This document shows positions 27,406 to 57,629 of a DNA stretch of 64,000 bases, piece by piece. Each line of letters opens with the position of its first letter. Position 1 is the stretch's first letter. Made by a program: the position numbers and the translations under genes. The notes under the pieces were generated by a model that was not told the origin of the DNA, did no database searches, and saw nothing but the letters and a program-made list of their open reading frames with translations. Source of the stretch: Selaginella moellendorffii (taxonomy: Eukaryota; Plantae; Lycopodiophyta); contig NW_003314289.1 of NCBI RefSeq assembly GCF_000143415.4, forward strand, positions 1,048,787 to 1,112,786, in the 5' to 3' direction.

Positions 27406-28055
27406 TCAAACTTCACTTTCCAGGAAGGACTCGGGATTTGCCTGCTTCGCTTCCTTGTTATAGAAGAAAAAGGCCTCGGGATTAGCCTGCTTTACTTCCT
27501 TGTTATAGAAGACGAAGGACTCAGGATTTGCTTGCTTTTCTTCCCTATTTGCTTGCTTCGCTTCCTTGTTATAGAAGACGAAGGACTCTGGATTTGCCTG
27601 CTTTACTTCCTTGTTATAGAAGACGAAGGACTCGGAATTTGCCTGCTTCACTTCCTTGTTATAGAAGACGAAGGCCTCGGGATTAGCCTGCTTCACTTCC
27701 TTGTTATAGAAGACGAAGGACTCAGGATTTGCTTGCTTTTCTTCCTTATTTGCTTGCTTCGCTTCCTTGTTATAGAAGACGAAGGACTCGGGATTTGCCT
27801 GCTTCGCTTCCTTGTTATACAAGAGGATGGACTCGGGATTTGCCCGCTTCGTTTCCTTGTTATACAAGAGGATGGACTCGGGATTTGCCTGCTTTGCTTC
27901 ATTGGTGTACATTACCTCTCCAGGCACTTGCTTTTCATTGTCCTTGAGTGTACGTAGTGCTGCAGCTGCCTGAAGTACATATATCATTCAGAAAACTTAG
28001 AAGCAGAGATTGATCTCACCGTGAAACACAAGAGGACTGTAATGAGCCACGCCAT
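27406..28055 (-). CDS. Burpitide-type precursor peptide 1 (199 aa; exons 28055-28020 and 27969-27406); cores ILLY x2, FVFY x6, FFFY x1
   Basis: A 50-nt GT-AG intron joins signal peptide MAWLITVLLCFT to AAAALRTLKD. 45-bp in-frame repeats end in Tyr tetrapeptides. Divergent from the BURP gene. Confidence 0.88.
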
Positions 28056-28334
28056 GGTTTCTATGAAAATGTGGTGTTCTTGGATGTCCTTTTATAGTAA
28101 GGCTCTACTTTAAACTTCGTATTCTTATTATCTTAATACATTAGAGCTATCAAAATATCAACGCTGTATAGTAAAAGATCAGGATCTTCTTGGTCAGACG
28201 TCACTTTCCAGCAAGTTTTCAATGAAAATTTAAGTTCGTCCTTATCTCTTATACATAGAAAAATACTGAACAAGTGAAACATCACACCAACACAAGTTCA
28301 TATTATAATTATAGACTTTGCAATTCCAGAACTC

Positions 28335-29340
28335 ATGGCGGACACTTTGTTGGTTCTCATGTTCCTGGCATTATGTGTGGTAAGCTTCACGAATTTCATA
28401 ACTCTTCGAATCAAATCCAACTGATTGTGCTCTCCGCCAGGGATACTTGGAGGGATTCCAACTTCCACGCTCCATTCGTGAGAGGCTATCGCCCCTTGAC
28501 GACGCTTCAGCGCTGCACATCAAGCAGGAACTCCAAGCTTCCAGCAGGATATCACACGAGTCGTGCAAAGCCGCTGGTCTCTTGTGCGGTGATGAACATC
28601 ACTCCCTTCGTCAGCTTTTTCACCACCACCATGACCATCACGACAGGAGCGCCATGGAATCCTCCACTCGAGATCTCGCCCAGAGGACCTTCTTTCAGCT
28701 CAAGACGCTTGTTGGTGCCAAGAACATACAGTTGCCACCGCCACTGCGCTGGGACAACTCCATCCCTGTGAGTAAATTCCTTCATCCGCTACTAGAGCCT
28801 GTGCTTGCGTCCATGAATCTGTCCCAGCTCCTGTCCACCATGCACTTCTCGAGCCAGTCTCCATTCGCAGCGACGAGCAAGGATAGCCTGGAAATGTGCT
28901 CCTCCCACGGGGGGATCAAGCACGAGATCAAGGGTTGTCACGTCTCGGCAAAGTCCATCCTGGATCAGGCCTCTTCGACCCTCCACAAGCTCGAGTTGAA
29001 GTATGTGGCCAACACTCTGGAGTTTGATCCGAACGAACCATTCCAGGTGGTAGAGACGAGGGTGGTGGCTGCAGATGGATCTCTGGCCTGTCACCCCATG
29101 ACTTTCCCATTCGCCATCTTCATGTGCCACACAATACCGAACAGTCTCGTGTTGGAGGTGGATCTACTGAGAAGTTCTTCCAAGAACACGAAGCCTGCCA
29201 TGGTGAAAGTTCCTGCGGTTTGCCATATGGATACCTCTGATTTCGCGCCTTCTCATATCTCTTTTAAGATTCTTAACACCAGGCCCGGCGAGGGAGAGGT
29301 TTGTCACTGGCTTCCTACTTCTCATCTCGTGTGGTATTAA
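28335..29340 (+). CDS. Stand-alone BURP-domain protein 1 (314 aa; exons 28335-28379 and 28441-29340), candidate Cu-dependent peptide cyclase
   Basis: Signal peptide MADTLLVLMFLALCVG, FF start motif (RTFFQ), two Cys, CH-X10-CH-X30-CH-X25-CH-W and terminal HLVWY. No internal core repeats. Confidence 0.93.
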
Positions 29341-29849
29341 GCTCCAAGCCTGAATGCTAGAGTGAATATATAGTAAAGTTTGATCACAAGGAGAATAAGA
29401 ATTATGTGGCACTCCATGCCTCAACCGTCTTTTAATGAGCCAGCTTGAGACTGAGGATCTTCTTCGCAGCGAAAGAAGAAGACGTGATCGACTCCAAGCT
29501 GAGCGTCCACTAGATCTCTCATGAGGACCACAAAGGAGGGAGGGCCACAGTAATCCACATCTTTGTATGGGGCCGAGCTTGGGCCTGGTTAATAGCATTA
29601 TATTATGATTCTTCCCAGGTTTTACCAGAAGAAAGAATTGGGATTTGGCTGCTTGGATCCTTCCATACCAGAACAAAGCTTCAGGATTTGGCTTCCTTGC
29701 CATGCCAGAAGAACGACTCAGGTTTTGGGAACATAACATTTTGATAAAAAAAACCATGGCTTGGTTCATTACAGTGCAATCTCAGTCCTTGATTTCTAGC
29801 AACAACTTCAATGTACACCAAGAGAGCCTTAATATATTATACACTTTTC

Positions 29850-29985
29850 TCAACTTTGCAGATCTCAACTTTGCAGAATATCAACTTTTTAAAATCTCAA
29901 CAGATCTCAACTTTGCAGATCTCAACTTCGCAGAATATCAAGTTTTAAAATCTCAACAGATCTCATCAGAAATCAACTTTGCAGA
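29850..29985. repeat. 15-bp minisatellite (gatctcaactttgca), also at ~39265-39560, 49170-49305 and 58175-58395
   Basis: Direct tandem repeats whose copy number differs between units. Confidence 0.85.
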
Positions 29986-30164
29986 CAACGCTGTAAATTA
30001 AGAGATCCTTGTCTTCTAGCATAAATCGCAACTGGTGTCATTCAATCATCCACGTGAAACATCACTCTCCAGCAAGTTTTCAATAACACTTTTGCAGACA
30101 AAGTTTAACAATGACGTCGTACTTGTTTTGGTATATTTCTACTTTAACTATAGACTTGGACTAA

Positions 30165-30915
30165 CGCCGGACACTTGTTTGGTTCTCGTATTATGTGTAT
30201 TAAGATTGACAACTCTTACAATCAAATCAAAACGATTGTTTACGAGATTCCATCTTCCACTATGACGCTTCAGCTCTGGCTATCAAGCAAGAAATCGAAG
30301 CTTCCGGCAGGATGTGACGTGAGTCAGTCTATTGTGCAGTGATGAACATCACTCCCTTTGTCAGAAAGTGAATCATTTTCTGTACATTGGACCCAAACAT
30401 TTTTCCACTTTGCACAACTCTGTGGGGATAATAGGTTTTTGCATATTTGAAGGTAAGAGAGAGTGATTCTAAAATTTGGACATTCTTCAAACCCCGAGTG
30501 CAACCATTTCTGAAAAATCCTAAAGAATATTGAACCAAATGATGACGTCATTATTTCGCATTTTTGATTCCGGACGAACGTTTGGTGCAAGGATAACCTG
30601 GCGATGTCCCAAGTCGCCGGGATCAAGCACCAGATCAAGTCTTATCACGTCTCCACAAAGTCCACTTCGACCCTCCCAAGCTCGAGTTGGACACTCCAAA
30701 CGAATTATTCTAGGTGGTGGTGGCTGCATCGCCTGTCACCCCATACTTTCCCATTCACCATCTTCATGTGGCACACGATACGGGAGAAGTTCTTCCAAGA
30801 AGACGAAGCCTGCCACGGTGAAAGCTCCAGTGGTTTGTCTTATGATTTCGAACCTTCTCACATCTCTTTTAAGATTCTGGCCCGGCGAGGTACTTCTCAT
30901 CTCGTGTGGTATTAA
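30165..30915 (+). pseudogene. Second, degenerate BURP copy in unit 1
   Basis: GIKHQIKSYHVS, FPFTIFMWHT, PSHISFKIL and TSHLVWY; CH motifs mutated, frameshifted. Confidence 0.85.
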
Positions 30916-32570: not shown

Positions 32571-32669
32571 CGCTCTAAACTCTCGTTAAGTAATCGTACG
32601 AATATGCTCCATTCTTTGCTCCGGTTCGAATCGCGTAGCTAACGTTTAATTTTTTGTAACTATGTTGCC

Positions 32670-34270
32670 ATGGACAAAGCCCGATCGTGCAAAAGCCTCC
32701 CAATGGCCCAGGAGATCCACAAACGCATCCAGGCGAATCCACCACTCCACGAGAGCCTCTTTGTCTACTGTTTAACCAGTTTGGCAGTCTCGTAAATGCC
32801 CGAAGCGTGTTTGATCGCATCGAGAACAAGGATGTTTTGTCGCTGGTTCTTATGATCTGCGGCTACTCTCGCAGCGGGCAAGTTTCCAATGCAAAAGCCA
32901 TCTTTGATTCCATGCCCGAAAAGAATCTTACAAGCTGGAACGCTATGATGGCAGCATATGCCAAGAATGGGTATATGGACGAGGCAGAACTACTGTTTCA
33001 AGAGATGCCGTTTCACGATGCCGTGTCATGCAACACGCTCATAGCTGCACACTCGCAAAGAGGGAATTTGGATACTGCGAAGGAGATCTTTGATGACATG
33101 CTTTTTAAAACTCTACCATGCTGGAATGCCATGCTATCTGCATATGCCACAGGCTGGCATCTTGTACAAGCAAGACAGACATTTCACTCGATGCCTGCTC
33201 GAAATCTGATCTCTTGGACATTATTCTTAAACGCACTAATCATGGAGGATGATCTTCAAATGACTAGAAGTGTTTTAGCGAAATGCCCTGCTGGAATCTG
33301 TTTGCCTGTAACTCAGTACTTTCCGCATATGCCCGAAAGGGGAATCTTCTCGAAGCCATGCTAATCTTTGACACAATGCTCGAGAGGGATATAATCACTT
33401 ACACAAACATGCTGGAAGCTTTCATCTACAACGGTTGCCTCTTTGAAGCCAGCAATTTGTTCTCGCGGATGCCATAGCGGGATCTTGTGGCCTACACCGT
33501 AATGGAATCGGCCTATGCTCAAAAGGGCGAGCTCGAGAGAGCCGAGGCCATCTTCAACTCCATGCCGCAGCGTGATCTCGTCGCTTGGAACGCCATGATC
33601 CGGGGCTTACTCCCAACACGGCTGAGTCGAGCAAGCAAAGTTTCTCTTTGATTCCATGGCCGAGAGAAACTTGGTCTTCTGGACCTCAATGCTCACGGCT
33701 TACACAATAAGTGGCTACTTCTCGCAAGCAGAGCAAAACTCCGTCTCGTGGAATGCCATCCTTTGCATGTATGCTCAGCACGGCCATTTGAGCTCCGCAA
33801 GGAAGATTTTCGATGCCATGCCCGAGCAAGGAGTGGTATCATGGAGCGCCATGCTCGCTGCCCACGTGAGAAACTTGTCCTCTTCCCGTGCTCTCGAGCT
33901 CTTTGACGAGATGAAAGCTTTGCATTGTCCCGACGAAGCTTGCTTCTTCTCGGCTATGGTTTCGTTTGGGCAGCAAGGCTGCATCTCCAGAGCCAAGTCT
34001 TGTTTTGGTTCCATGGTGGCCGACTATGAAGTGGCGCCATCAAAGCAGCACTACTGTTGCATGGTGGATTTGCTCGTTCGATCTGGGAGAAGTTTGGAGG
34101 CCGAGGAACTTGTGTTGGCCATGCCTTTTGAGCCCAGTAACTTGGAATGGTCGTGCTTGCTGCGTGAAAGAAACTCCAGTTCGATGTTAATCACCAGAGG
34201 CAAGCATGCTTTAAGATCAAGTTCCTCGGATGGAGCGGTTTACGTGCTGCTTGCCAATGCATTAACTTGA
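32670..34270 (+). pseudogene. PLS-class PPR pseudogene
   Basis: Same sequence family as 61723-63387 but with frameshifts and a premature TAG at 33475-33477. Confidence 0.88.
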
Positions 34271-36370
34271 AAGCTAATATGAAACCTGCACATTAAAAAG
34301 ATGGGGCTTTATTTCACAATGGCACTTGAGTAAGTTTTGGTTTTGCTATTGTGCCTCTATGTATCCTTCAGTTTGGGTTGCCACACGGAAGAGGGCTGTG
34401 GTCGTTCTATGAGGCTGATGACCCCAATGCTTCTCCGCTTGCTCTTGCTCAATGGAGGTTTTTGTTTAAGATAGACGCATCTATACTAGTAATACTAGCA
34501 CCTTTATACAAAAAGATGCAAAGAAGCTAGTTATTAATATTAGTGCTTGCTTCATTGTTTCAAAAACTTGAGCGTCCACTAGATCTCTACCACAAAGGAT
34601 GGCCATCCCAGCGAAGTGGTGGCAACGAACAAAGTCTAGGAATGCTGGCACCTCCAATCCATCCGTGGACACCAAAGCTCTTGGTTAATAATCATCAAAG
34701 TAAATCCGTTTATACCCTCATTTATGATAAGCTTTTGCTCTTATACCAAAAGAAAAGAATTGGGATTTGGCTGCTCATACCAGAACAAAGCATTGGGATT
34801 GGCTTCCGTGCCAAACCATACATTTGAGAACATAACCTTAGTCGATGTTCTAACTTGTCTGAATGATATATGTACTTCAGGCATCTACAGCACTTCAAAT
34901 GCTCAAGGAGAAAGGGGCCACACTGCAATCTCAGTCCTTGATTTCTAGCAACAAGGTAATGTACGCATAGAAAAACGAATACACACCTTTTGCTCTTGTA
35001 CCACAATGGAGCCTTTCTCGCATGCACACCACAGCCCTCGGCTTCGCTCACCTCAAACCCATATTTCAATTACCACTACCCACCCTGCCCCAGGCGTGAG
35101 ATCGGGGCTGGGTTCTTTATTTTTATTATTATAGATTACTATTTTATTAAATTTTCTTAAATATCAAGAATGAACTAGCAAGAGGGATATACAATGAGAT
35201 GAAGTTTAAGAAATGTCACTCTTAAACTTTGTTTCTAATCAGTGTTTAATGTTAATTTTGGCAACTTTCTTGTTGAGGTACCTGTTGCCATCTTTTTGGA
35301 TTTTCATAAAACCGCAACGAGGAGTTAGGGGCTTGGCATTTAGCAAGCCAAGTCAAAAGGAGCCAAATTTCCTCTGTCTTTTAAGTTTTGTAGCACCCCT
35401 TTTGCATTTGCATTAGTTGTGGCTAAATGCAACACTTTACGGCTAGGCTGAATGCCCTAATGGCGCCGGTGGGCATTTTAGGCCCAGGTGGCGTGCGCTA
35501 GAGCCGTCTATTCCGCTATTTGCGCCACCTCTTGGTCACCAAGCCCTAATAAAAATTTAAAATTTAAGAAAAAGTTCATAGTGTATTTTCCATTTGACAG
35601 AATATTCTGTCAACAGTGTTGACTTGGCTCCCTATACCATGAATTGCAACTCACACTTTTTACATACAAAATTCATATTATCCTTTAAGTTAAAAGGATC
35701 CACATTGACAAATCTGTAACAGCCTCAATGGAGGAGAACTCTCACAAGGGTGACACCATTCCCCATCATTTCTCCTAATACACAATAGTTAGCATTTTAA
35801 CATTAATGTCCAATAGTAAGCAAATGTCTCAATCTAAAAAAGTCATTAAGTGCTACTTTACATATGCTAAATAGTATATTAGAATATATATTTAAAGACA
35901 AACCACTGTGATATATCAGAAACTAAATTGCATAAAAAATAATAAAATGAAAGCAAACCACGTTCACAACAAAATATTAATGCTAATGCCTCTTTTTGTT
36001 AATTAAATTATTTGATTTTAAAATTGTGCTAGAGTTTATGGTTCACTTGCTCCTAAGAAAAATGTTACTTTTTACGTGAAGATGTCTACATATTTATCTA
36101 TGAAGAATGAGATTAGAAATAGATAGAAATGTTTCCTTATGAGATTATAGGGTATTATTTGAATGCTTACAAATAAAATATAAGCTTGATTCTGTTTATA
36201 AGTTTTCAAGAAAACTTTTTCTGATTTCAAAGGGTTTTTTTTAATTGTATTTTATTTGTGTATTTTATTGTAAGGCTCTACTTTAAACTTCATATTTTTA
36301 TTATCTCAATACAGTAGAGCTTTGCAAAGTATCAGCTATATAATAAGAGATCCATAAAGGATTTTCTTAG

Positions 36371-37272
36371 TCAAACTTCACTTTCCAGGACGGACTCGGG
36401 ATTTGCCTGCTTCGCTTCCTTGTTATAGAAGACGAAGGACTCTGGATTTGCCTGCTTCACTTCCTTGTTATAGAAGACAAAGGCCTCGGGATTAGCCTGC
36501 TTTACTTCCTTGTTATAGAAGACGAAGGACTCAGGATTTGCTTGCTTTTCTTCCCTATTTGCTTGCTTCACTTCCTTGTTATAGAAGACGAAGGCCTCGG
36601 GATTTGCCTGCTTCGCTTCCTTGTTATAAAAGACAAAGGACTCAGGATTTGCCTGCTTCACTTCCTTGTTATAGAAGACGAAGGCCTCGGGATTAGCCTG
36701 CTTCACTTCCTTGTTATAGAAGACGAAGGCCTCGGGATTTGCCCGCTTCTGCTTCACTTCCTTGTTATAGAAGACGAAGGACTCAGGATTTGCTTGCTTT
36801 TCTTCCTTATTTGCTTGCTTCGCTTCCTTGTTATAGAAGACGAAGGACTCGGGATTTGCCTGCTTGGCTTCCTTGTTATAGAAGACGAAGGACTCGGGAT
36901 TTGCCTGCTTTACTTCCTTGTTATAGAAGACGAAGGCCTCGGGATTTGCCTGCTTCACTTCCTTGTTATAGAAGACGAAGGCCTCGGGATTTGCCTGCTT
37001 CACTTCCTTGTTATAGAAGACGAAGGACTCAGGATTTGCTTGCTTTTCTTCCTTATTTGCTTGCTTCGTTTCCTTGTTATAGAAGACGAAGGACTCGGGA
37101 TTTGCCTGCTTTGCTTCATTGGTGTACATTACCTCTCCAGGCACTTGCTTTTCATTGTCCTTGAGTGTACGTAGTGCTGCAGCTGCCTGAAGTACATATA
37201 TCATTCAGAAAAGTTAGAAGCAGAGATTGATCTCACCGTGAAAAACAAGAAGACTGTAATGAGCCACGCCAT
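36371..37272 (-). CDS. Burpitide-type precursor peptide 2 (283 aa; exons 37272-37237 and 37186-36371); FVFY x14
   Basis: Signal peptide MAWLITVFLFFTAAAA after splicing a 50-nt intron, upstream TATAAA on -, and 14 in-frame repeats. Confidence 0.9.
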
Positions 37273-37398
37273 GGTTTCTATCAAAATGTGGTGTTCTCGG
37301 AAGAAAAACTTAGCAGCGCGCTCGGGAAGAGGCAACTAAGGCAGCGGCAGTGGTGGAGAAGGAGGAGCTGTTCCTGGAGCCAGACTCGATTCCATGTC

Positions 37399-37712: not shown

Positions 37713-38719
37713 ATGGCGGACACTTTGTTGGTTCTCATGTTCCTGGCATTATGTGTGGTAAGCTTCACGAATTTCATGACTCTTTCGAATCAAATCCAAC
37801 TGATTGTGCTCTCCGCCAGGGGTACTTGGAGGGATTCCAACTTCCGCGCTCCATTCGTGAGAGGCTATCGCCCCTTGACGACGCTTCAGCGCTGCACATC
37901 AAGCAGGAACTCCAAGCTTCCAGCAGGATATCACACGAGTCGTGCAAAGCCGCTGGTCTCTTGTGCGGTGATGAACATCACTCCCTTCGTCAGCTCTTTC
38001 ACCACCACCATGACCATCACGACAGGAGCGCCATGGAATCCTCCACTCGAGATCTCGCCGAGAGGACCTTCTTTCAGCTCAAGACGCTTGTTGGTGCCAA
38101 GAACATACAGTTGCCACCGCCACTGCGTTGGGACAACTCCATCCCTGTGAGTAAATTCCTTCATCCGCTGCTAGAGCCTGTGCTTGCGTCCATGAATCTG
38201 TCCCAGCTCCTGTCCACCATGCACTTCTCGGGCCAGTCTCCATTCGCAGCGACGAGCAAGGATAGCCTGGAAATGTGCTCCTCCCACGGGGGGATCAAGC
38301 ACGAGATCAAGGCTTGTCACGTCTCGGCAAAGTCCATCCTGGATCAGGCCTCTTCGACCCTCCACAAGCTCGAGTTGAAGTATGTGGCCAACACTCTGGA
38401 GTTTGATCCGAACGAACCATTCCAGGTGGTAGAGACGAGGGTGGTGGCTGCAGATGGATCTCTGGCCTGTCACCCCATGACTTTCCCATTCGCCATCTTC
38501 ATGTGCCACACAATACCGAACAGTCTCGTGTTGGAGGTCGATCTACTGAGAAGTTCTTCCAAGAACACGAAGCCTGCCATGGTGAAAGTTCCTGCGGTTT
38601 GCCATATGGATACCTCTGATTTCGCGCCTTCTCATATCTCTTTTAAGATTCTTAACACCAGGCCGGGCGAGGGAGAGGTTTGTCACTGGCTTCCTACTTC
38701 TCATCTCGTGTGGTATTAA
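37713..38719 (+). CDS. Stand-alone BURP-domain protein 2 (314 aa; exons 37713-37757 and 37820-38719)
   Basis: Intact signal exon, GT-AG intron, four CH motifs and terminal W; near-identical to copy 1. Confidence 0.93.
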
Positions 38720-39749
38720 GCTCCAAGCCTGAATGCTAGAGTGAATATATAGTAAAGTTTGATCACAAGGAGAATAAGAATTATGTGGCACTCCATGCCT
38801 CAACCGTCTTTTAACGAGCCAGCTTGAGACTGAGGATCTTCTTCGCAGCGAAAGAAGAAGACGTGATCGACTCCAAGCTGAGCGTCCACTAGATCTCTCA
38901 TGAGGACCACAAAGGAGGGAGGGCCACAGTATTCCACATTTTTGTACGGGGCCGAGCTTGTGGGGCATCCGTGGAGACCATAGTTTGGAGCCAGATTGTT
39001 ATCCAAAGCTCCTGGCTAATAGCATTATATTGTGATGCTTCCCAAAGAAAGAATTGGGATTTGGCTGCTTGGCATCCTTCCATACCGGAATAAAGCTTCA
39101 GGATTTGCCTTCCTTGCCATACCAGAAGAAAGACTCAGGTTTTGGGAACATAACATTTTGATAAAAAAAACCATGGCTTGGTTCATTACAGTGCAATCTC
39201 AGTCCTTGATTTCTAGCAACAACTTCAATGTACACCAAGAAAGCCTTAATATATTGTACACGTTTCTCAACTTTGCAGAACATCAACTTTTTAAAAGCTC
39301 AACAGATTTCAACCTTGCAGGTCTCAACTTTGCAGATCTCAACTTTTCTTTGCAGGTCTCAACTTTGCAGGTCTCAACTTTGCAGAATATTAACTTTTTA
39401 AAAGCTCAACAGACGTCAGCCTTGCAGGTCTCAACTTTTCAGATCTCAACTTTGCAGGTCTCAACTTTGCAGAATATTAACTTTTTAAAAGCTCAACAGA
39501 CGTCAGCCTTGCAGGTCTCTACTTTTCAGATCTCAACTTTGCAGGTCTCAACTTTGCAGAATATTAACGCTGTAAATTAAGAGATCCTTGTCTTCTAGCA
39601 TAAGCGCAGCTGGTGTCATTCAATCATCCATGTGAAACATCACTTTCCAGCAAGTTTTCAATGACAATTTTGCAGACAAAGTTTAACAACGACGTCGACT
39701 CGTGCTCTACTTGTTTGGTATATTTCTACTTTAACTATAGACTTGGACT

Positions 39750-44633: not shown

Positions 44634-46691
44634 AAGCTAATATGAAACCTGTACATTAAAAAGATGGCTCATTTCAAGGGCTTTATTTCACAATGGCACT
44701 TGAGTAAGTTTTGGTTTTGCTGTTGTGCCTCTATGTCTCCTTCAGTTTGGGTTGCCACACGGAAGAGGGCTGTGGTCGTTCTACGAGGCTGATGACCCCA
44801 ATGCTTCTCCGCTTGCTCTTGCTCAATGGAGGTTTTTGTTCAAGATAGACGCATCTATACTAGTAATACTAGCTTTGTACAAAAAGATGCAAAGAAGCTA
44901 GTTATTAATATTAGAGCTTGCTTCATTGTTTCAAAAAGTTGAGCGTCCACTAGATCTCTACCACAAAGGAGGGTCATCCCAGCGAAGTGGTGGCAACGAA
45001 CAAAGTCTAGGAATGCTGGCCCCTCCAATCCATCCGTGGACACCAAAGCTTAAGCTTTTGCTCCTATACCAAAAGAAAGAATCGGGATTTGGCTGCTCAT
45101 ACCAGAACAGAGCATTGGGACTGGCTTCCGTGCCAAACCATACATTTGAGAACATAACCTTGGTTCATTATAGTCGATGTTCTAACTTGTCTGAATGATA
45201 TATGTACTTCAGGCATCTACAGCACTTCAAATGCTCAAGGACAAAGGGGCCATACTGCAATCTCAGTCCTTGATTTCTAGCAACAAGGTAATGTACGCAT
45301 AGAAAAACGAATACACACCTTTTGCTCTTGTACCACAATGGAGCCTTTCTCGCACCACAGCCCTCGCCTTCGCTCACCTTAAACCCATATTTCAATTACC
45401 ACTACCCACCCTGCAGGCTTGAGATCGGGGCTATTATTATAGATTACTATTTTATTAAATTTTCTTAAATATCAAGAATGTATAATAAAAGATCCCTCTT
45501 GCTATATAAAACATCAGTTCAATGAGACAAAGTTTAAGAAATGTCACTCTTAAACTTTGTTTTTAATCAGTGTTTAATGTTAATTTTATTTATTAAAAAG
45601 GCAACCCCTCTCTCCCATTGTTGCCATCTTTTTGGATTTTCATAAAACCACTACGAGGAGTTAGGGGCTTGGCATTTAGCAAGCCAAGTCAAAAGGAGCC
45701 AAATTTCCTCTGTCTTTTAATAGATGCCCCTTTTACACCCCAAGCATTTGTGGCTAAATGCACTTTATGGCTAAGCTGAATGCCATTTAGGGCCTAATGG
45801 CACCGGTGGGCATTTTAGGCCCAGGTGGCGTGCGCTAGAGCCCCGGCTATTTGGCCCCCAACGGCACCCGTCTGTTCCGCTATTGGCCACCAAGCCTAAT
45901 TAAAAATTAAGAAAAAGTTCATAGTGTATTTTCCATTTGACAGAATATTCGGTCAACAGTGTTGACTTGCACTACACTTTTTACATACAAAATCCATATT
46001 ATCCTTTAAGTTAAAAGGCTCCACATTGACAAATCTGTAACAACCTCAATGGAGGAGAACTCTCACAAGGGAGACACCATTCCCCATCATTTCTCCTAAT
46101 ACACAATGGTTAGCATTTTAACATTAATGTCCAATAGTATCTCAATCTAAACAAGTCATTAGGTGCTACTTACATATGCTAAATAGTATATTAGAATATA
46201 TATTTAAAGATAAACCATTATGATATATCAGAAACTAAATTGCATAAAAAATAATAAAATGAAAGCAAACCACGTTCACAACAAAATATTAATACTAATG
46301 CCTCTTTTTGTTATTTTAAAATTGTGCTAGAGTTTATGGTTCACTTGCTCCTAAGAAAAATTTTACTGTCTACATGAAGATGTCTACATATTTATCTATG
46401 AAGAATGAGATTAGAAATAGATAGAAATGTTTCCTTGTGAGATTATAGGGTATTATTTGAATGCTTACAAATGATTCTGTTTATAACTTTTCAAGAAAAC
46501 CAATCAATGACAGGGTAACATGGTTAATTTAAACTGAATTATGTTTAAAGGTTAGAAGGACATTTTTTTCTGATTTGAAAGGGTTTTATTTTTTTTATTG
46601 TATTTTATTATCTTAATACATTACAGCTTTGCAAAATATCAACGCTGTATAGTAAGAGATCTTTGTCTCCTAGCATAAAGGATCTTCTTAG

Positions 46692-47254
46692 TCAAACGTC
46701 ACTTTCGAGGAAGGATTGGGGATTTGCTTGCTTCGCTTCCTTGTTATACAAGAGGATGGACTCGGGATTTGCCTGCTTCACTTCCTCGTTATACAAGAGG
46801 ATGGACTCGGGATTTCCCTGCTTCGCTTCCTCGTTATACAAGAGGATGGACTCGGGATTTGCCTGCTTCGCTTCCTCGTGATACAAGAGGATGGACTCGG
46901 GATTTGCCTGCTTCGCTTCCTTGTGATACAAGAGGATGGACTCGGGATTTGCCGGCTTCGCTTCCTTGTCATACAAGAGGATGGACTCGGGATTTGCCTG
47001 CTTCGCTTCCTTGTCATACAAGAGGATGGACTCGGGATTTGCCTGCTTCGCTTCCTTGTCATACAAGAGGATGGACTCGGGATTTGCCTGCTTTGCTTCA
47101 TTGGTGTACATTACCTCTCCAGGCACTTGCTTTTCATTGTCCTTGAGTGTACGTAGTGCTGCAGCTGCCTGAAGTACATATATCATTCAGAAAACTTAGA
47201 AGCAGAGATTGATCTCACCGTGAAAAACAAGAAGACTGTAATGAGCCACGCCAT
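46692..47254 (-). CDS. Burpitide-type precursor peptide 3 (170 aa; exons 47254-47219 and 47168-46692); ILLY x8
   Basis: Spliced signal peptide and 8 exact 15-aa repeats; the residue after Tyr is D, H or N. Confidence 0.9.
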
Positions 47255-47608: not shown

Positions 47609-48627
47609 ATGGCAGACACTTTGTTGGTTCTCATGTTCCTGGCATTATGTGTGGTAAGCTTCACGAATTTCATGACTCTTTCGAATCAAATCCAACTGAT
47701 TGTGCTCTTCGCCAGGGATACTTGGAGGGATTCCAACTTCCACGCTCCATTCGTGAGAGGCTATCGCCCCTTGACGACGCTTCAGCGCTGCACATCAAGC
47801 AGGAACTCCAAGCTTCCAGCAGGATATCACACGAGTCGTGCAAAGCCGCTGGTCTCTTGTGCGGTGATGAACATCACTCCCTTCGTCAGCTCTTTCACCA
47901 CCACCATGACCATCACGACAGGAGCGCCATGGAATCCTCCACTCGAGATCTCGCCCAGAGGACCTTCTTTCAGCTCAAGACGCTTGTTGGTGCCAAGAAC
48001 ATACAGTTGCCACCGCCACTGCGCTGGGACAACTCCATCCCTGTGAGTAAATTCCTTCATCCGCTGCTAGAGCCTGTGCTTGCGTCCATGAATCTGTCCC
48101 AGCTCCTGTCCACCATGCGCTTCTCGAGCCAGTCTCCATTCGCAGCGACGAGCAAGGATAGCCTGGAAATGTGCTCCTCCCACGGGGGGATCAAGCACGA
48201 GATCAAGGCTTGTCACGTCTCGGCAAAGTCCATCCTGGATCAGGCCTCTTCGACCCTCCACAAGCTCGAGTTGAAGTATGTGGCCAACACTCTGGAGTTT
48301 GATCCGAACGAACCATTCCAGGTGGTAGAGACGAGGGTGGTGGCTGCAGATGGATCTCTGGCCTGTCACCCCATGACTTTCCCATTCGCCATCTTCATGT
48401 GCCACACAATACCGAACAGTCTCGTGTTGGAGGTGGATCTACTGAGAAGTTCTTCCAAGAACACGAAGCCTGCCATGGTGAAAGTTCCTGCGGTTTGCCA
48501 TATGGATACCTCTGATTTCGCGCTTCTCATATCTCTTTTAAGATTCTTAACACCAGGCCGGGCGAGGGAGAGGTTTGTCACTGGCTTCCTACTTCTCATC
48601 TCGTGTGGTATTAAGCTCCAAGCCTGA
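47609..48627 (+). pseudogene. BURP-domain protein 3 with a 1-nt deletion near 48522 that removes the 4th CH motif
   Basis: ttcgcgcttctc here versus ttcgcgccttctc in the other copies; reads DFALLISLL... instead of DFAPSHISF...VCHW. Could be a sequencing error. Confidence 0.8.
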
Positions 48628-49484
48628 ATGCTAGAGTGAATATATAGTAAAGTTTGATCACAAGGAGAATAAGAATTATGTGGCACTCCATGCCTCAACC
48701 GTCTTTTAATGAGCCAGCTTGAGACTGAAGATCTTCTTCGCAGCGAAAGAAGAAGACGTGATCGACTCCAAGCTGAGCGTCCACTAGATCTTTCATGAGG
48801 ACCACAAAGGAGGGAGGGCCACAGTAATCCACATCTTTGTATGGGGCCGAGCTTGGGGGGCATCCGTGGACACCATAGTTTGGAGCCAGATTGTTATCCA
48901 AAGGTCCTGGTTAATAGCATTATATTATGATTCTTCCCAGGTTTTACCAGAAGAAAGAATTGGGATTTGGCTGCTTGGCATCCTTCCATACCAGAACAAA
49001 GCTTCAGGATTTGGCTTCCTTGCCATGCCAGAAGAAAGGCTCAGGTTTTGGGAACATAACATTTTGATAAAAAAAACCATGGCTTGGTTCATTACAGTGC
49101 AATCTCAGTCCTTGATTTCTAGCAACAACTTCAATGTACACCAAGAGAGCCTTAATATATTATACACTTTTCTCAACTTTGCAGATCTCAACTTTGCAGA
49201 ATATCAACTTTTTAAAATCTCAACAGATCTCAACTTTGCAGATCTCAACTTCGCAGAATATCAAGTTTTAAAATCTCAACAGATCTCATCAGAAATCAAC
49301 TTTGCAGACAACGCTGTAAATTAAGAGATCCTTGTCTTCTAGCATAAATCGCAACTGGTGTCATTCCATCATCCACGTGAAACATCACTCTCCAGCAAGT
49401 TTTCAATGACAATTTTGCAGACAAAGTTTAACAATGACGTCGTACTTGTTTTGGTATATTTCTACTTTAACTATAGACTTGGAC

Positions 49485-52236: not shown

Positions 52237-52256
52237 CCACATTGAACTATGTTCCC

Positions 52257-53815
52257 ATGGACAAAGCCCGGGAGCTCATTCGATCGTGCAAAAGCCTTCC
52301 AATGGCCCAGGAGATCCACAAACGCATCCAGGCGAATCCACCACTCCCACCACACGAGAGCCTCTTTGTCTCCAACAATCTCCTCGCACTGTTTAACCAG
52401 TTTGGCAGCCTCGCAAATGCCCGAAGCGTCTTTGATCGCATCGAAAACAAGGATGTTTTCTCGCTGGTTCTTATGATCTGCGGCTACTCTCGCAGCGGGC
52501 AAGTTTCCATGGAAAAGCCATCTTTGATTCCGTACCCGAGAAGAATCTTACAAGCTGGAACGCTATGGTGGCAGCATATGCCAAGAATGGGTATCTGGAC
52601 GAGGCAGAACTTTTGTTTCAAGAGATGCCATTTCATGATGCCGTGTCATGCAATACGCTCATAGCTGCACACTCGCAAAGAGGGCATTTGGATACTGCGA
52701 AGGAGATCTTTGATGACATGCTTTTTAAAACTCTACCATGCTGGAATGCCATGCTATCTGCATATGCCACAGCTGGCATCTTGTACGAGCAAGACAGACA
52801 TTTCACTCGATGCCTGCTCGAAATCTGATCTCTTGGACATCATTCTTAAACGCACTAATCATGGAGGAAGATCTTCAAATGACTAGAAAGTGCTGGAAGC
52901 TCTCATCCAAAACGGTTGCCTCTTTGAAGCCAGCAATTTGTTCTCGCGGATGCCACAGCGGGATCTTGTGGCCTACACCGTAATGCAATCGGCCTATGTT
53001 CAAAACGGCGAGCTCGAGAGAGCCGTGGCCATCTTCACCTCCATGCCGCAGCGTGATCTCGTCGCTTGGAACGCCATGATCGGGGTTACTCCCAACACGA
53101 CCTAGTCGAGCAAGCAAAGCTTTTCTTTGATTCCATGGCCGAGAGAACTGGACCTCAATGCTCACGGCTTACACAATATGTGGCTACTTCTCGCAAGCAA
53201 AGCTCGTCTTTCTCGACATGTCCGAGCAAAACTCCGTCTCGTGGAATGCCATCCTTTGCATGTATGCTCAGCACGGCCATTTGAGCTCTGCAAGGAAGAT
53301 TTTCGATGCCATGCCCGAGCAAGGAGTGGTATCATGGAGCGCCATGCTCGCTGCCCAGGTAAGAAACTTGTCCTCTTCCCATGCTCTCGAGCTCTTTGAC
53401 GAGATGAAAGCTTTGCATTGTCCCGACGAAGCTAGCTTCTTCTCAGCTATGGTTTCGTTTGGGCAGCATCTCAAAAAAGCTTAATTAACTTTGCCATTTT
53501 GATGAACAACTTAAATTCACAAAAATGACTTTTTTGGGAAGAAATTCTTCTCCCAAATCGAACGAGCAAATCCACCATGCAAGAGTAGTGCTGCTTTGAT
53601 GGCGCCACTTCATAGTCGGCCACCATGGAACCAAAGCAATGGAGGCCGAGGAACTTGTGTTTGCCATGCCTTTTAAGCCCAGTAACTTGGAATGGTCGTG
53701 CTTGCTGCGTGAAAGAAACTCCAGTTCGACGTTAATCACCAGAGGCAAGCATGCTTTAAGATCAAGTTCCTCGGATGGAGCGGTTTACGTGCTGCTTGCC
53801 AATAGATTAACTTGA
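52257..53815 (+). pseudogene. PLS-class PPR pseudogene with deletions and an internal inversion
   Basis: Multiple frameshifts; ~53550-53640 is the reverse complement of PPR coding sequence. Confidence 0.88.
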
Positions 53816-55959
53816 AAGCTCTGTACATTAAAAAGATGTCTCATTTCAAGGGCTTTATTTCACAATGGCACTTGAGTAAGTTTTGGTTTTGCTATTGTGC
53901 TTCTATGTCTCCTTCAGTTTGGGTTGCCACATGGAAGAGGGCTGTGGTCGTTCTACGAGGCTGATGACCCCAATGCTTCTCCGCTTGCTCTTGCTCATGG
54001 AGGTTTTTGTTCAAGATAGACGCATCTATACTAGCAATACTAGCTTTGTACAAAAAGATCCAAAGAAGCTAGTTATTAATATTAGTGCTTGCTTCATTGT
54101 TTCAAAAAGTTGAGCGTCCACTAGATCTCTACCGCAAAGGAGGGCCATCCCAGCGAAGTGGTGGCAATGAACAAAGTCTAGGAATGCTGGCACCTCCAAT
54201 CCATCCGTGGACACCAAAGCTCTTGGTTAATAATCATCAAAGTAAATCCGTTTATACCCTCATTTATGATAAGCTTTTGCTCCTATACCAAAAGAAAGAA
54301 TCGGGATTTGGCTGCTCATACCAGAACAAAGATTGGCTTCCTTGCCATACCATACATTTGAGAACATAACCTTGGTTCATTATAGTCGATGTTCTAACTT
54401 GTCTGAATGATATATGTACTTCAGGCATCTACAGCACTTCAAATGTTCAAGGACAAAGGGGCCACACTGCAATCTCAGTCCTTGATTTCTAGCAACAAGG
54501 TAATGTATGCATAGAAAAACGAATACACACCTTTTGGTCTTGTACCACAATGGAGCCTTTCTCGCATGTACACCACAGCCCTCGGCTTCGCTCACCTCAA
54601 ACCCATATGTCAATTACCACTACCCACCCTGCCCATCGGGGCTGGGCTCTTTATTTTTATTATTATAGATTACTATTTTATTAAATTTTCTTAAATATCA
54701 AGAATGTATAATAAAAGATCCTCTTGCTATATAAAAACATCAGTTCAATGAGACAAAGTTTAAGAAATGTCACTCTTAAACTTTGTTTCTAATCAGTTTT
54801 AACGTTAATTGCATTTATTAAAAAGGCAACCTTCTTGTTGAGGTACCCCTCTCTCCCATTGTTGCCATCTTTTTGGATTTTCATAAAACCGCTATGAGGA
54901 GTTAGGGGCTTGGCGTTTAACAAGCCAAGTCAAAAGGAGCCAAATTTCCTCTGTCTTTTAAGTTTTGTAGCGCCCCTTTTACACCCCAAGCATTTGCATT
55001 GGTTGTGGCTAAATGCAACACTTTACGGCTAGGCTGATTTAGGGCCTAACTGCATTTTAGGCCCAGGTGGCGTGCGCTAGAGCCCCGGCTATTTGGCCCC
55101 CAACAGCGCCCGCCCTAATTATAAATTAAGAAAAAGTTCATAGTGTATTTTCCATTTAACAGAATATTCGGTCAACAGGGCTCGCTACACTTTTTACATA
55201 CAAAATCCATATTATCCTTTAAGTTAAAAGGATCCACATTGACAAATCTGTAACAACCTCAATGGAGGAGGACTCTCACAAGGGAGACACCATTCCCCAT
55301 CATTTCTCCTAATACACAATAGTTAGCATTTTAACATTAATGTCCAGTAGTATGCAAAATGTCTCAATCTAAATAAGTCATTAGGTGCTACTTTACATAT
55401 GCTAAATAGTATATTAGAATATATATTTAAAGACAAACCACTGTGATATATCAGAAACTAAATTGCATAAAAAAATAATAAAATGAAAGCAAACCACGTT
55501 CACAACAAAATATTAATACTAATGCCTTTTTTTTTAATTAAATTATTTTATTTTTAAATTGTGCTAGAGTTTATGGTTCACTTGCTCCTAAGAAAAATTT
55601 TACTTTCTGCATGAAGATGTCCACATATTTGTCTATGAAGAATGAGATTAGAAATAGATAGAAATGTTTCCTTATGAGATTATAGGGTATTATTTCAATG
55701 CTTACAAATAAAATATAAGCTTGATTCTGTTTATAATTTTTCAAGAAAACCAATTAATGACATGGTTAATTTAAACTGAATTATGTTTAAATGTTAAGAG
55801 GATTTAAACACATTTTTCCTGATTTGAAAGTTTCTTTTATTGTATCTTATTTGTGTTTTCCGATTGCAAGGCTCTACTTTAAACTTCATATTCTTATTAT
55901 CTTAATACATTAGAGCTTTGTAAAATATCAACGCTGTATAGCATAAAGGATATTCTTAG

Positions 55960-56252
55960 TCAAACGTCACTTTCCAGGAAGGACTCGGGATTTGCCTGCT
56001 TGGCTTCCTTGTTATAGAAGACGAAGGACTCGGGATTTGCCTGCTTCGCTTCCTTGTTATAGAAGAGGAAGGACTCGGGATTTGCCTGCTTCGCTTCATT
56101 GGTGTACATTACCTCTCCAGGCACTTGCTTTTCATTGTCCTTGAGTGTACGTAGTGCTGCAGCTGCCTGAAGTACATATATCATTCAGAAAGGTTAGAAG
56201 CAGAGATTGATCTCACCGTGAAAAACAAGAAGACTGTAATGAGCCACGCCAT
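55960..56252 (-). CDS. Burpitide-type precursor peptide 4 (80 aa; exons 56252-56217 and 56166-55960); cores FLFY and FVFY
   Basis: Same signal exon and intron as copies 1-3, only two repeats, ends FLESDV. Confidence 0.87.
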
Positions 56253-56622
56253 GGTTTCTATCAAAATGTGGTGTTCTCAGAAGAAAAACTTAGCAGCGCG
56301 CTCACGGGAAGAGGCAACTAAGGCGGCGGCAGTGGTGGAGAAGGAGGAGCTGTTCCTGGAGCCAGACTCGATTCCATGTCCTTTTATAGTAAAGCTCTAC
56401 TTTAAACTTCGTATTCTTATTATCTTAATACATTAGAGCTTTGCAAAATATCAACGCTGTATAGTACGAGATCCTTGTCTCCTAGCATAAAGGATCCAGC
56501 AAGTTGTCAATGAAAATTTAAGTTCGTCCTTATCTTTTATACATAGAAAAATACTGAACAAGTGGAACATCACACTAGCACAAGTTCATATGATAATTAT
56601 AGACTTTGCAATTCCAGAACCC

Positions 56623-57629
56623 ATGGCGGACACTTTGTTGGTTCTCATGTTCCTGGCATTATGTGTGGTAAGCTTCACGAATTTCATGACTCTTTCGAAT
56701 CAAATCCAACTGATTGTGCTCTCTGCCAGGGATACTTGGAGGGATTCCAACTTCCACGCTCCATTCGTGAGAGGCTATCGCCCCTTGACGACGCTTCAGC
56801 GCTGCACATCAAGCAGGAACTCCAAGCTTCCAGCAGGATATCACACGAGTCGTGCAAAGCCGCTGGTCTCTTGTGCGGTGATGAACATCACTCCCTTCGT
56901 CAGCTCTTTCACCACCACCATGACCATCACGACAGGAGCGCCATGGAATCCTCCACTCGAGATCTCGCCCAGAGGACCTTCTTTCAGCTCAAGACGCTTG
57001 TTGGTGCCAAGAACATACAGTTGCCACCGCCACTGCGCTGGGACAACTCCATCCCTGTGAGTAAATTCCTTCATCCGCTGCTAGAGCCTGTGCTTGCGTC
57101 CATGAATCTGTCCCAGCTCCTGTCCACCATGCACTTCTCGAGCCAGTCTCCATTCGCAGCGACGAGCAAGGATAGCCTGGAAATGTGCTCCTCCCACGGG
57201 GGGATCAAGCACGAGATCAAGGCTTGTCACGTCTCGGCAAAGTCCATCCTGGATCAAGCCTCTTCGACCCTCCACAAGCTCGACTTGAAGTATGTGGCCA
57301 ACACTCTGGAGTTTGATCCGAACGAACCATTCCAGGTGGTAGAGACGAGGGTGGTGGCTGCAGATGGATCTCTGGCCTGTCACCCCATGACTTTCCCATT
57401 CGCCATCTTCATGTGCCACACAATACCGAACAGTCTCGTGTTGGAGGTGGATCTACTGAGAAGTTCTTCCAAGAACACGAAGCCTGCCATGGTGAAAGTT
57501 CCTGCGGTTTGCCATATGGATACCTCTGATTTCGCGCCTTCTCATATCTCTTTTAAGATTCTTAACACCAGGCCGGGCGAGGGAGAGGTTTGTCACTGGC
57601 TTCCTACTTCTCATCTCGTGTGGTATTAA
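56623..57629 (+). CDS. Stand-alone BURP-domain protein 4 (314 aa; exons 56623-56667 and 56730-57629)
   Basis: Intact signal exon and all four CH motifs. Confidence 0.93.

Follow-up and report, generated by a model that had tools for sequence, protein, structure and literature searches.

Selaginella moellendorffii probably makes 14-membered cyclopeptide alkaloids by a split burpitide pathway, a candidate route that, judged from its sequence, would have arisen within the Selaginella BURP lineage. The window, by which we mean the whole 64,000-nucleotide stretch of DNA that was analyzed, contains an array of four ∼9.5-kb tandem duplicates on scaffold GL377593.1, each with one precursor/BURP pair (Table 1). 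In all four units the precursor gene (A) lies on the minus strand, head-to-head with a stand-alone BURP gene (B) on the plus strand, and the ATG-to-ATG spacers of pairs 1 to 4 measure 279, 440, 354, and 370 bp. These gene models bear out the four divergent pairs, 279 to 440 bp apart, of a preliminary description of this DNA. We presume that the spacers act as bidirectional promoters. The organism had been called a probable lycophyte, and so it proved: the BURP is 99 to 100% identical to S. moellendorffii XP_024534238, and window positions 18335-39340 are 100% identical to GL377593.1. The arrangement found is that of a split system, with a cyclase free of core repeats and, nearby, a separate signal-peptide precursor with Tyr-ended cores.

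Table 1. Coordinates of the precursor/BURP cassettes and their relics (window positions)
Feature	Position	Strand	Description
Fifth, older BURP copy	24508..25598	+	Pseudogene: stops, frameshifts, splice donor lost; ∼82% DNA identity to live copies
Precursor A1	27406..28055	-	199 aa; exon 2 27406-27969, intron 27970-28019, exon 1 28020-28055; 9 cores: ILLY x2, FVFY x6, FFFY x1
Shared spacer A1/B1	28056..28334	.	279 bp between divergent start codons; putative bidirectional promoter
BURP B1	28335..29340	+	314 aa; four intact CH motifs; exon 1 28335-28379, exon 2 28441-29340
Fossil precursor units	29622..29726	-	Trp-containing cores ARKPNPEA-LFWY, KPES-FFWH; frameshift-broken; 37-bp repeat
Decayed second BURP fragment	30264..30912	+	Within duplication unit 1; equivalents in other units
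Precursor A2	36371..37272	-	283 aa; 14 FVFY cores
BURP B2	37713..38719	+	314 aa; intact
Precursor A3	46692..47254	-	170 aa; 8 ILLY cores
BURP B3	47609..48627	+	1-bp deletion at ∼48523 shifts frame; fourth CH motif lost
Precursor A4	55960..56252	-	80 aa; cores FLFY, FVFY; exon 2 55960-56166, exon 1 56217-56252
Spacer A4/B4	56253..56622	.	370 bp; 56403-56603 without RNA cover
BURP B4	56623..57629	+	314 aa; intact; exon 1 56623-56667, exon 2 56730-57629

The precursor genes have two exons, the first of which (36 nt) encodes MAWLITVFLFFT and is followed by a 50-nt intron. Their leader, AAAALRTLKDNEKQVPGEVMY, is without the Ax6YWx7PMP motif, and the genes (n = 4) are made almost wholly of 15-residue units in which an 11-residue spacer, NKE[A/V]KQANPE[S/A], precedes a 4-residue hydrophobic core, XXXY, ending in Tyr. 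The signal peptide and the near-total repeat noted earlier were borne out in all four precursors, the former as a hydrophobic, signal-peptide-like first exon. Each A protein has 2 to 14 units, and the 33 cores of the four precursors comprise 21 FVFY, 10 ILLY, one FFFY, and one FLFY. When 27 fifteen-residue units were compared, no variation was seen at Tyr(+4), E(-9), K(-7), N(-4), or E(-2); Ser or Ala stands at -1 in 27 of 27, and P(-3) is present in 26 of 27. The sole hydrophobic spacer position is Ala/Val at -8, flanked by Glu(-9) and Lys(-7). Core residues 1 to 3 change together, as blocks, from unit to unit, and position 2 is mostly Val or Phe rather than Leu. In this pattern the repeat units behave like a conserved recognition sequence joined to a variable core with an invariant Tyr.

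Public annotation has a 199-aa gene at the A1 position and a 283-aa gene at the A2 position. A word-indexed search of 5.8 billion proteins returned no relative of the precursors at E 0.001, annotated S. moellendorffii proteins included; this null is uninformative on novelty because the repeats and composition filters are its likely cause. The PF10950 profile did not match the precursors even at E 10, and by language-model features the top look-alikes were PF10950 clusters with weak scores of 0.77-0.78, under the 0.9 line. Pfam matches to DUF1829 (29 bits), DUF4811, T2SSS_2, and others were rejected as summed chance matches to the repeat. BLASTP of the precursor against the SkrBURP repeat domain gave E 1e-8, a value driven by the repeated cores. 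The precursors may or may not be homologous to the SkrBURP repeats: leader and spacer without the cores scored no better than shuffles (p 0.23, 0.11, 0.02), and we count this non-significant spacer likeness against the split-pathway reading.

The BURP genes likewise have two exons, with a 45-nt exon 1 that encodes the signal peptide and an intron of 61 to 62 nt, and the gene model equals the RefSeq protein (P0001) at every residue. All four BURPs match Pfam PF03181 (E 4e-43 to 2e-27). For B1, B2, and B4 the match has E 4e-43 to 7e-43 and spans profile positions 2-215 of 216, whereas that of B3 stops at position 184 of 216. C232H233, C244H245, C276H277, C303H304, and W313 are conserved without exception in an alignment of 42 BURPs, and the CH motifs of the window BURPs align with those of AhyBURP (8SY2/8SY3), where the four Cys-His pairs form the copper site. 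The intact CH motifs earlier credited to these genes stand for B1, B2, and B4, where all four are complete, but not for B3, in which the 1-bp deletion (CDS position 853) removes the final Trp along with the fourth Cys-His motif. This loss makes B3 probably inactive in this haplotype, and one frameshifted gene among four cyclase genes was counted against the split-pathway reading. A search of the window BURPs for internal core repeats found none, as had been claimed. An AlphaFold2 model of the BURP (mean pLDDT 88, pTM 0.84) had 8SY3 and 8SY2 as its sole significant Foldseek matches in the PDB, with probability 1.00, E of about 1e-9 to 3e-10, and TM 0.62-0.65 by target.

In an exhaustive HMMER search of a 1.84-billion-protein representative library, the best non-self match of the window BURP was SkrBURP (QXY82431; E 1.5e-39 vs 3e-29 for the next), and a word-indexed search gave nothing beyond the protein itself. 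Identity between SkrBURP and the window BURPs is 39% over the BURP domain, a low value that counts against the split-pathway reading. A maximum-likelihood tree placed the window BURPs as sister to SkrBURP (support 96/83), followed by a fused precursor of S. uncinata (98/95), and a 100/99 branch separated this Selaginella clade from the eudicot BNM2 clade, which in the tree includes NCBI-named BNM2A/C-like proteins (Malania, Punica, Momordica) and a Cinchona protein. A phylogeny with SkrBURP and ArbB2 had been suggested beforehand; the SkrBURP part is supplied by the sister placement, and ArbB2, like CamB1 and ZjuBURP, lies outside the sequences of the tree. The cores of SkrBURP are ILLY, VLFY, FLLY, and FLFY, plus P(S)Y. 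The enzyme cyclizes xLxY cores, ILLY and FLFY among them (PMC11253845, PMC10349150), and a monocyclic alkaloid derived from ILLY was reported from S. kraussiana (PMC10349150). The two fused relatives would favor fission in S. moellendorffii. An SPLD...C...C segment after the signal peptide is seen in the window, S. uncinata, and Ginkgo BURPs but not in SkrBURP, and the lack in SkrBURP of an N-terminal BURP segment kept by the window BURPs would fit fusion in S. kraussiana.

In each cassette, transcription proceeds outward both ways from the 279-440-bp spacer, and both mRNAs are spliced. RNA contigs from four public runs (four studies) skip the 50-nt precursor intron and the 62-nt BURP intron exactly as modeled, in agreement with the transcription and splicing predicted beforehand. 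The spliced junctions of A4 (56165/56216) and B4 (56666/56729) were each found in contigs of three of the four runs, and part of the spacer (56403-56603) is uncovered, as is 55800-55933. Precursor and BURP transcripts are abundant in the four runs; contigs of runs X5, X7, and X14 carry variants of B1 or its allele, and a contig of run X1 carries B2 private variants. The 5′ UTR of A4 is visible to about 56376. RNA contigs extend 30 nt past this position, with sequence that occurs neither in the window nor in the two retrieved loci.

The cassette was indeed amplified as a unit, as had been proposed, yet inside a larger 9.5-kb duplicated block. Since the four pairs are copies of a single ∼9.5-kb segmental duplication, they amount to one evolutionary association kept four times, not four independent observations, and we count this single origin of the adjacency against the split-pathway reading. 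BURP coding sequences differ between copies at 6-10 of 945 nt, with synonymous to non-synonymous codon differences of 7:3, 4:2, and 5:3. The 800 bp downstream diverge by ∼10%, with indels, for some unit pairs, and the BURP introns by 1-2 of 62 nt. This low intron divergence shows that gene conversion, not selection alone, keeps the cassettes alike, which also weighs against the main reading. The PPR and extra BURP copies within the duplicated units are broken, and further copies of the fossil Trp-core precursor units lie near 39111, 49017, and 58022. On scaffold GL377587.1 of the other haplotype the head-to-head pairs recur, but their cores are mixed differently; there, an intact 314-aa BURP gene adjoins a similar 170-aa ILLY-rich precursor. 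Other genes in the window encode WD40, Gnk2/DUF26, DEAD-box helicase, Fic, LTR retroelement, RabGAP-TBC, and PPR proteins. Methyltransferase, 2OG oxygenase, and protease genes were sought in the window and none was found, which was counted against the split-pathway reading.

The substrate-plus-enzyme relationship put forward in the preliminary description gained support on all of its sequence-testable parts: the CH residues, the AhyBURP fold, the kinship to SkrBURP, the recognition/core pattern, and transcription. We envisage that the A and B proteins, which both start with a hydrophobic signal-peptide-like exon, enter the secretory pathway and that the 11-residue spacer is what the B enzyme recognizes and binds. 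In the presence of Cu and O2, the enzyme would join the phenol oxygen of Tyr4 to the β-carbon of residue 2, with a loss of 2 Da per core; the linked residue would be Leu in ILLY and FLFY, Val in FVFY, and Phe in FFFY. Proteases would cut after Ser/Ala(-1) and after Tyr to give cyclo-ILLY, cyclo-FVFY, cyclo-FLFY, and cyclo-FFFY, and these cyclic tetrapeptides may be N-methylated, like the selanines. Their calculated [M+H]+ values would be 519.3177 for cyclo-ILLY, 573.2708 for cyclo-FVFY, 587.2864 for cyclo-FLFY, and 621.2708 for cyclo-FFFY, with 28.031 added in N,N-dimethyl forms. With frameshifted B3 presumably inactive, A3 (ILLY x8) could be served in trans by B1, B2, or B4. The locus would evolve by unequal crossing-over plus birth and death of copies, and the split architecture would have arisen inside the Selaginella BURP lineage, apart from the eudicot BNM2-type split systems. 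A stronger claim, that this architecture arose a second time in Selaginella, from or alongside a fused SkrBURP-like ancestor, with precursors unrelated to PF10950 and a recognition element no longer than 11 residues, is in our estimate evenly balanced.

The repeat protein and the BURP could instead be unrelated secreted proteins, a hydrophilic repeat or cell-wall protein beside an RD22/BNM2-like stress protein, that share a promoter by the chance of one duplication and take part in no cyclization. Many BURP proteins have, to our knowledge, no known cyclase role, most lack demonstrated cyclase activity, and the four pairs are one duplicated association; among the language-model look-alikes of the precursor, all of which score weakly (0.70-0.78), are also clusters of "vegetative cell wall protein gp1-like" and of nodulin. 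However, the top look-alikes by these features are clusters of PF10950, the family of the angiosperm precursor ArbA2, and the closest relative, SkrBURP, is a proven cyclase on the same ILLY and FLFY cores. An invariant Tyr, a conserved spacer, and block-switching cores make up the pattern of a multi-core RiPP precursor, and both genes are intact while neighboring duplicated genes decay. We consider a chance pairing unlikely. In another reading, the pathway is real in origin but its young duplicates, like other relics of the array, are becoming pseudogenes with little or no product. B3 is frameshifted, and the array contains defunct BURP sequences (the fifth copy and fragments) as well as fossil precursor units, but frames, splice sites, and catalytic residues are intact in every precursor and in all BURPs except B3, the abundant transcripts of both genes are correctly spliced in the four runs, differences between BURP copies are mostly synonymous, and intact pairs are kept on the allelic haplotype too. 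We consider a decaying pathway quite improbable.

It is also conceivable that the BURPs act on the precursors but make another cross-link or ring size, for example to residue 1 or 3 or through a Tyr C-C bond as proposed for hibispeptins. In most cores position 2 is occupied by Val or Phe instead of Leu, identity to SkrBURP is just 39%, and known burpitide cyclases form C-O, C-N, and C-C links (PMC8672867). On the other hand, the sister enzyme SkrBURP makes rings from Tyr-O to the residue-2 Cβ on xLxY cores, ArbB2 likewise forms a Y4-L2 link, in the four-residue core LLLY (PMC12186524), and Val and Phe β-carbons, like that of Leu, are known cyclopeptide-alkaloid ring sites (PMC11253845). We regard a different linkage as very improbable, and favor the split pathway with a Tyr4 to residue 2 bond.

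Burpitide cyclases are under development as biocatalysts for analgesic and anxiolytic cyclopeptide alkaloids. SkrBURP has been used for Leu-linked rings, and split cyclases are reported to be hard to produce (2026 preprint PMC12871766). If the split-pathway reading is true, a split sister of SkrBURP would offer a trans-acting catalyst for xLxY, xVxY, and xFxY cores together with a short recognition tag for substrate design; should the stronger claim hold, an element of 11 residues or fewer would be the smallest natural substrate tag of a copper peptide cyclase. SkrBURP and Smo-A/B would form a natural fused-versus-split pair for testing the gain or loss of leader dependence in RiPPs, and this kinship would make both the evolution and the mechanics of substrate recognition directly testable. 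Split burpitide pathways would extend from eudicots to a lycophyte, and specific new metabolites, cyclo-FVFY and others, would be predicted in a model plant with a sequenced genome.

The literature examined, with the original SkrBURP paper (Nat Chem Biol 2022), the PMC10107690 supplements, and plantiSMASH beyond its scope, documents split pathways from angiosperms alone and, for Selaginella, nothing but the fused SkrBURP; no description of a split pathway in S. moellendorffii was found there, consistent with the earlier suggestion that a split lycophyte system may be undescribed. The S. moellendorffii system shares with SkrBURP, the selanine cyclase, its genus, four CH motifs, a signal peptide, and Tyr-ended hydrophobic tetrapeptide cores, with ILLY and FLFY identical. 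SkrBURP, however, is its own substrate, with eight cores built into its N-terminal domain, whereas in S. moellendorffii the cores are in a separate divergent gene; spacers are 20-23 residues in SkrBURP and 11 here, and FVFY and FFFY, which differ at position 2, are absent from SkrBURP. In SkrBURP a second ring arises from the P(S)Y extension of the cores, and as S. moellendorffii cores are without it, only monocyclic products would be expected. AhyBURP from peanut (8SY2/8SY3), the sole significant fold match, whose four CH motifs align, is a USP-type, autocatalytic enzyme with one core inside the BURP domain and a Trp-N-C link, and is 16-19% identical to the window BURP.

A stand-alone secreted BURP with a separate secreted multi-core precursor is what S. 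moellendorffii has in common with ArbA/ArbB (Coffea arabica), CamA/CamB1 (Ceanothus americanus), and ZjuPrec/ZjuBURP (Ziziphus jujuba). Also common to these eudicot pathways (PMC10107690, PMC12186524, PMC12871766) and S. moellendorffii are the alternation of recognition sequences with Tyr-ended cores, genomic co-localization, and arrays in which several precursors and BURPs stand together with defunct cyclase copies (ArbB1 is truncated). A partial likeness extends to the recognition positions, as Ser(-1) and Pro(-3), both of which were found to be important in ArbA2 (PMC12186524), come before the core. For eudicot clusters, we found no description of a strict head-to-head pair on a 279-440-bp spacer. 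The eudicot split cyclases belong to the BNM2 subfamily, whereas the window BURPs belong to the Selaginella clade. Eudicot precursors are of the PF10950 type, have the motif Ax6YWx7PMP in their leader, and are anchored by Phe(-7), and all three features are missing from the S. moellendorffii precursors. Phe(-7) is the key residue for binding in angiosperm split systems, and its lack was counted against the split-pathway reading. The recognition span is at most 11 residues in S. moellendorffii, compared with about 15 in ArbA2.

The locus holds four cassettes, each pairing a minus-strand precursor gene (A1-A4) head-to-head with a plus-strand BURP gene (B1-B4). Our A gene model comprises a 36-nt exon 1 (MAWLITVFLFFT), a 50-nt GT..AG intron, and an exon 2 holding the repeats. 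The B model, which matches RefSeq protein P0001 residue for residue, comprises a 45-nt exon 1 (MADTLLVLMFLALCV), a 61-62-nt GT..AG intron, and a 900-nt exon 2. ATG-to-ATG spacing was measured as 279, 440, 354, and 370 bp for pairs 1-4, in agreement with the 279-440 bp of the preliminary description. Both the A and B proteins have a strongly hydrophobic stretch at residues 2-16 (mean Kyte-Doolittle 2.1-2.2), after which the sequence turns hydrophilic; judged by hydropathy, these N-termini fit predicted signal peptides. The BURPs had also been credited with intact CH motifs, which holds for three of the four copies. In B3, a 1-bp deletion at CDS position 853 (about 48523), not shared by the other copies, changes the C-terminal 30 residues and thereby removes the fourth Cys-His motif as well as the final Trp, so the claim has to be limited accordingly.

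Features of the window (forward-strand window positions)
Feature	Position	Strand	Details
A1	27406-28055	minus	199 aa; ILLY x2, FVFY x6, FFFY
A2	36371-37272	minus	283 aa; FVFY x14
A3	46692-47254	minus	170 aa; ILLY x8
A4	55960-56252	minus	80 aa; FLFY, FVFY
B1	28335-29340	plus	314 aa; intact
B2	37713-38719	plus	314 aa; intact
B3	47609-48627	plus	318 aa; frameshifted
B4	56623-57629	plus	314 aa; intact
Dead fifth BURP copy	24508-25598		relic of earlier copies
Fossil precursor units, Trp-containing cores	29622-29726 (incl. 29694); copies near 39111, 49017, 58022	minus	
65-nt inverted copy of precursor intron/exon-2 junction	25899-25963, 34848-34912, 45180-45244, 54392-54456	plus	one per unit, 83-86% identity
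PPR gene copies	32687-34270, 42979-44553, 52242-53484, 61619-63510	plus	split into several frames
15-nt-period microsatellite-like arrays (TCTCAACTTTGCAGA and variants)	29848-29965, 39265-39568, 49171-49288, 58219-58393		one per unit, length varies between units
Uninterrupted 368-aa ORF, Fic/DOC domain	11057-12163	plus	Pfam E 1.6e-13; intact HPFLDGNGRIGR motif
LTR-retrotransposon remnants	13850-18800		retroviral aspartyl protease and reverse transcriptase domains

Tandem Repeats Finder detected arrays with a 45-nt period in each of the four repeat genes, the highest score being 809. A1-A4 contain 33 units, 27 of 15 residues, five with a 7-residue spacer duplication (…KQANKEEKQANPES…), and one with a 2-residue insertion. 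With negative positions counted back from the core, all 27 fifteen-residue units share Glu(-9), Lys(-7), Asn(-4), Glu(-2), and Tyr(+4), while 26 have Ala(-5), 26 have Pro(-3), and 25 have Gln(-6). Position -1 is Ser in 20 and Ala in seven, and position -8 is Ala in 14, Val in 12, and Thr in one. Core positions 1-3 switch blockwise between I-L-L and F-V-F. This layout is the pattern of published cyclopeptide-alkaloid precursors (PMC10107690, PMC11250218), in which the spacer is conserved, the hydrophobic core varies, and the C-terminal Tyr is invariant.

RNA contigs of four public runs from four studies were mapped to 55800-57800. Three of the four runs showed a splice junction exactly over the A4 intron at 56166-56215, where CT..AC on the plus strand is GT..AG for a minus-strand gene, and three of four showed one over the B4 intron (56667-56728, GT..AG). 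No contig of the four runs covered 55800-55933 or 56403-56603. Taken together, the two junctions and the uncovered stretches indicate that the precursor and BURP genes are transcribed divergently and spliced as predicted, both introns being skipped as modelled. Variants in the long BURP contigs assign them to copy B2 for run X1 and, for runs X5, X7, and X14, to copy B1 or its allele, hence at least two BURP copies are expressed. Contig depths of A and B covary across the four runs at roughly 2:1, though these are unnormalised assembler values and do not constitute evidence of co-expression. Separately, precursor 5′ UTR contigs from X1, X7, and X14 run past 56376 into AAGACCCCGGAAGAATTGGCGGAGGAGGAG (plus strand), a sequence absent from the window and from both retrieved loci; no AG acceptor is present at the 56376 break, and the extension may derive from a further paralogue, from a contig chimera, or from an exon lying upstream. 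Run X7 bears a different organism label (organism B) and matches the locus as nearly perfectly as the S. moellendorffii runs do; a wrong label, a mixed sample, or a very closely related organism may account for this.

The window BURPs match the Pfam BURP domain with E about 4e-43. Across 42 aligned BURPs, the columns without variation were C232 H233, C244 H245, C276 H277, T280, L293, G298, C303 H304, and W313, and the four CH pairs of the window BURP line up with their counterparts in AhyBURP, the peanut cyclase of solved structure. An AlphaFold2 model of the protein (mean pLDDT 88) matched only 8SY3 and 8SY2 in the PDB. Residues 67-84 (HHSLRQLFHHHHDHHDRS; B1 and its copies) are His-rich and modelled with low confidence. 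They lie between a conserved N-terminal segment and the BURP domain, the site of the cores in fused BURPs, and from their composition could act as a putative metal binder.

HMMER, run exhaustively against 1.84 billion representatives, yielded 703 BURPs. The best non-self match, P0002 (E 1.5e-39, 39% identity; next best 3e-29), is QXY82431, the characterised S. kraussiana cyclase SkrBURP, in which enzyme and cores are fused. Its sequence contains the cores ILLY, VLFY, FLLY, and FLFY; thus, two of the four core sequences of the window recur unchanged as the opening four residues of SkrBURP cores. Detection of a monocyclic ILLY alkaloid is on record for S. kraussiana (PMC10349150). The preliminary description had proposed a BURP phylogeny with SkrBURP, and our maximum-likelihood tree of 48 BURP domains (LG+C20; ArbB2, CamB1, and ZjuBURP not among them) places the window BURPs sister to this enzyme (ultrafast bootstrap 96, SH-aLRT 83). 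The pair in turn groups with the fused "lyciumin precursor" of S. uncinata (98/95), and placed with this Selaginella clade are sequences from Psilotum (a fern ally) and Ginkgo, some that are unlabelled, and a small number of angiosperm proteins, including one named polygalacturonase-1 non-catalytic subunit beta-like. Across a branch supported at 100/99 lies a eudicot clade (100/98) in which the proteins that carry a name are BNM2A/C-like. According to PMC12871766, the split cyclases known so far are members of the BNM2 subfamily.

The window BURP is 99-100% identical to S. moellendorffii proteins labelled "BNM2C-like", and window 18335-39340 corresponds to GL377593.1 of assembly GCA_000143415.2 at 100% identity. 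Public annotation already calls A1 and A2 as genes of 199 and 283 aa, without family assignment. A second scaffold, GL377587.1, is colinear with the locus (97-99%) and most likely represents the other haplotype. Since it carries the same head-to-head pairs, the arrangement is not an assembly artefact. One of these pairs combines a 170-aa precursor (seven ILLY, one FFLY) with an intact 314-aa BURP, and core content thus varies between alleles.

Self-BLAST resolved 27.4-57.6 kb into a ~9.5-kb block repeated four times in tandem, with identity between copies ranging from 85-98% by segment. Within each block, the repeat gene (minus strand) is followed by the BURP gene (plus strand), a second BURP fragment in decay, minus-strand RabGAP-TBC fragments, and plus-strand broken PPR frames, with dead BURP fragments in each duplication unit. 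PPR frame breakage is heaviest in unit 3, and RabGAP-TBC is annotated as fragments (118 aa) in the window haplotype compared with 413 aa in the other. Directly 3′ of each BURP gene lie fossil units (ARKPNPEA-LFWY or LFRY, KPES-FFWH or FFWY) that are scattered across three frames, which marks them as a dead second precursor family. Related Trp-core relics (ANPNA-LFWY, FFWY) occur at 34700-35080. The 65-nt inverted relics look like remains of former precursor genes in opposite orientation. The array has undergone birth-and-death, and the A/B cassette is the part remaining intact. Elsewhere in the window, LTR-retrotransposon remnants lie between housekeeping genes and the BURP array, and a Fic/DOC ORF is present, which is unusual in nuclear genes of land plants.

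The three intact BURP CDSs differ at 6-10 of 945 nt, with synonymous to non-synonymous codon differences of 7:3, 4:2, and 5:3. The 800 bp downstream differ by about 9-11%, with many indels, in four of six unit pairs and by only about 1-4% in pairs 1/3 and 2/4; the promoter spacer between A and B differs by 2-9%, with large indels. Because the BURP intron is conserved as much as the exons, gene conversion contributes to cassette similarity.

The analyses demonstrate divergent spliced transcripts, hydrophobic N-termini, a multi-core architecture, intact copper-site residues, and a BURP fold, and by sequence the window BURP is sister to a proven Tyr-O-Cβ cyclase using the same cores. In the pathway we propose, the A and B proteins would co-localise in the secretory pathway, where the B enzyme would recognise the 11-residue spacer and form a Cu/O2-dependent ether link from Tyr4 to the β-carbon of residue 2. 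Cores would be released by proteolysis, with possible N-methylation. Documented cyclopeptide-alkaloid ring sites include the β-carbons of Leu, Phe, and Val (PMC11253845), which makes FVFY and FFFY chemically plausible cores.

Split burpitide pathways, their genomic clustering, and the fused Selaginella pathway are all already published. In the literature examined, we found no split pathway in non-flowering plants or outside the BNM2/PF10950 families. An automated plantiSMASH 2.0 listing of the locus may exist, since the preprint on that tool states that BURP clusters whose repeats are external are detected in a set of 430 genomes, and it treats S. moellendorffii in connection with a different cluster. 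A survey of 700 Streptophyta transcriptomes sampled no Selaginella and reported zero precursors in its two lycophytes (PMC11250218). Stand-alone precursors are, in the definition of Lima et al. (PMC10107690), mostly PF10950 proteins with an Ax6YWx7PMP leader. In contrast, the window precursors lack this leader motif and gave no match to PF10950 even at E 10; PF10950 clusters were the top look-alikes in a language-model search, but with scores of 0.77-0.78 that by the tool's own rating amount to no more than a lead. In the system of a JACS 2025 study, Phe(-7) flanked by charged residues is essential, Ser(-1) matters, and Pro(-3) helps (PMC12186524). The window precursors keep Ser/Ala(-1) and Pro(-3) and have Ala/Val(-8) flanked by Glu and Lys, whereas position -7 is Lys. 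The system thus appears to work like the angiosperm split pathways, yet departs from them in two family-defining features.
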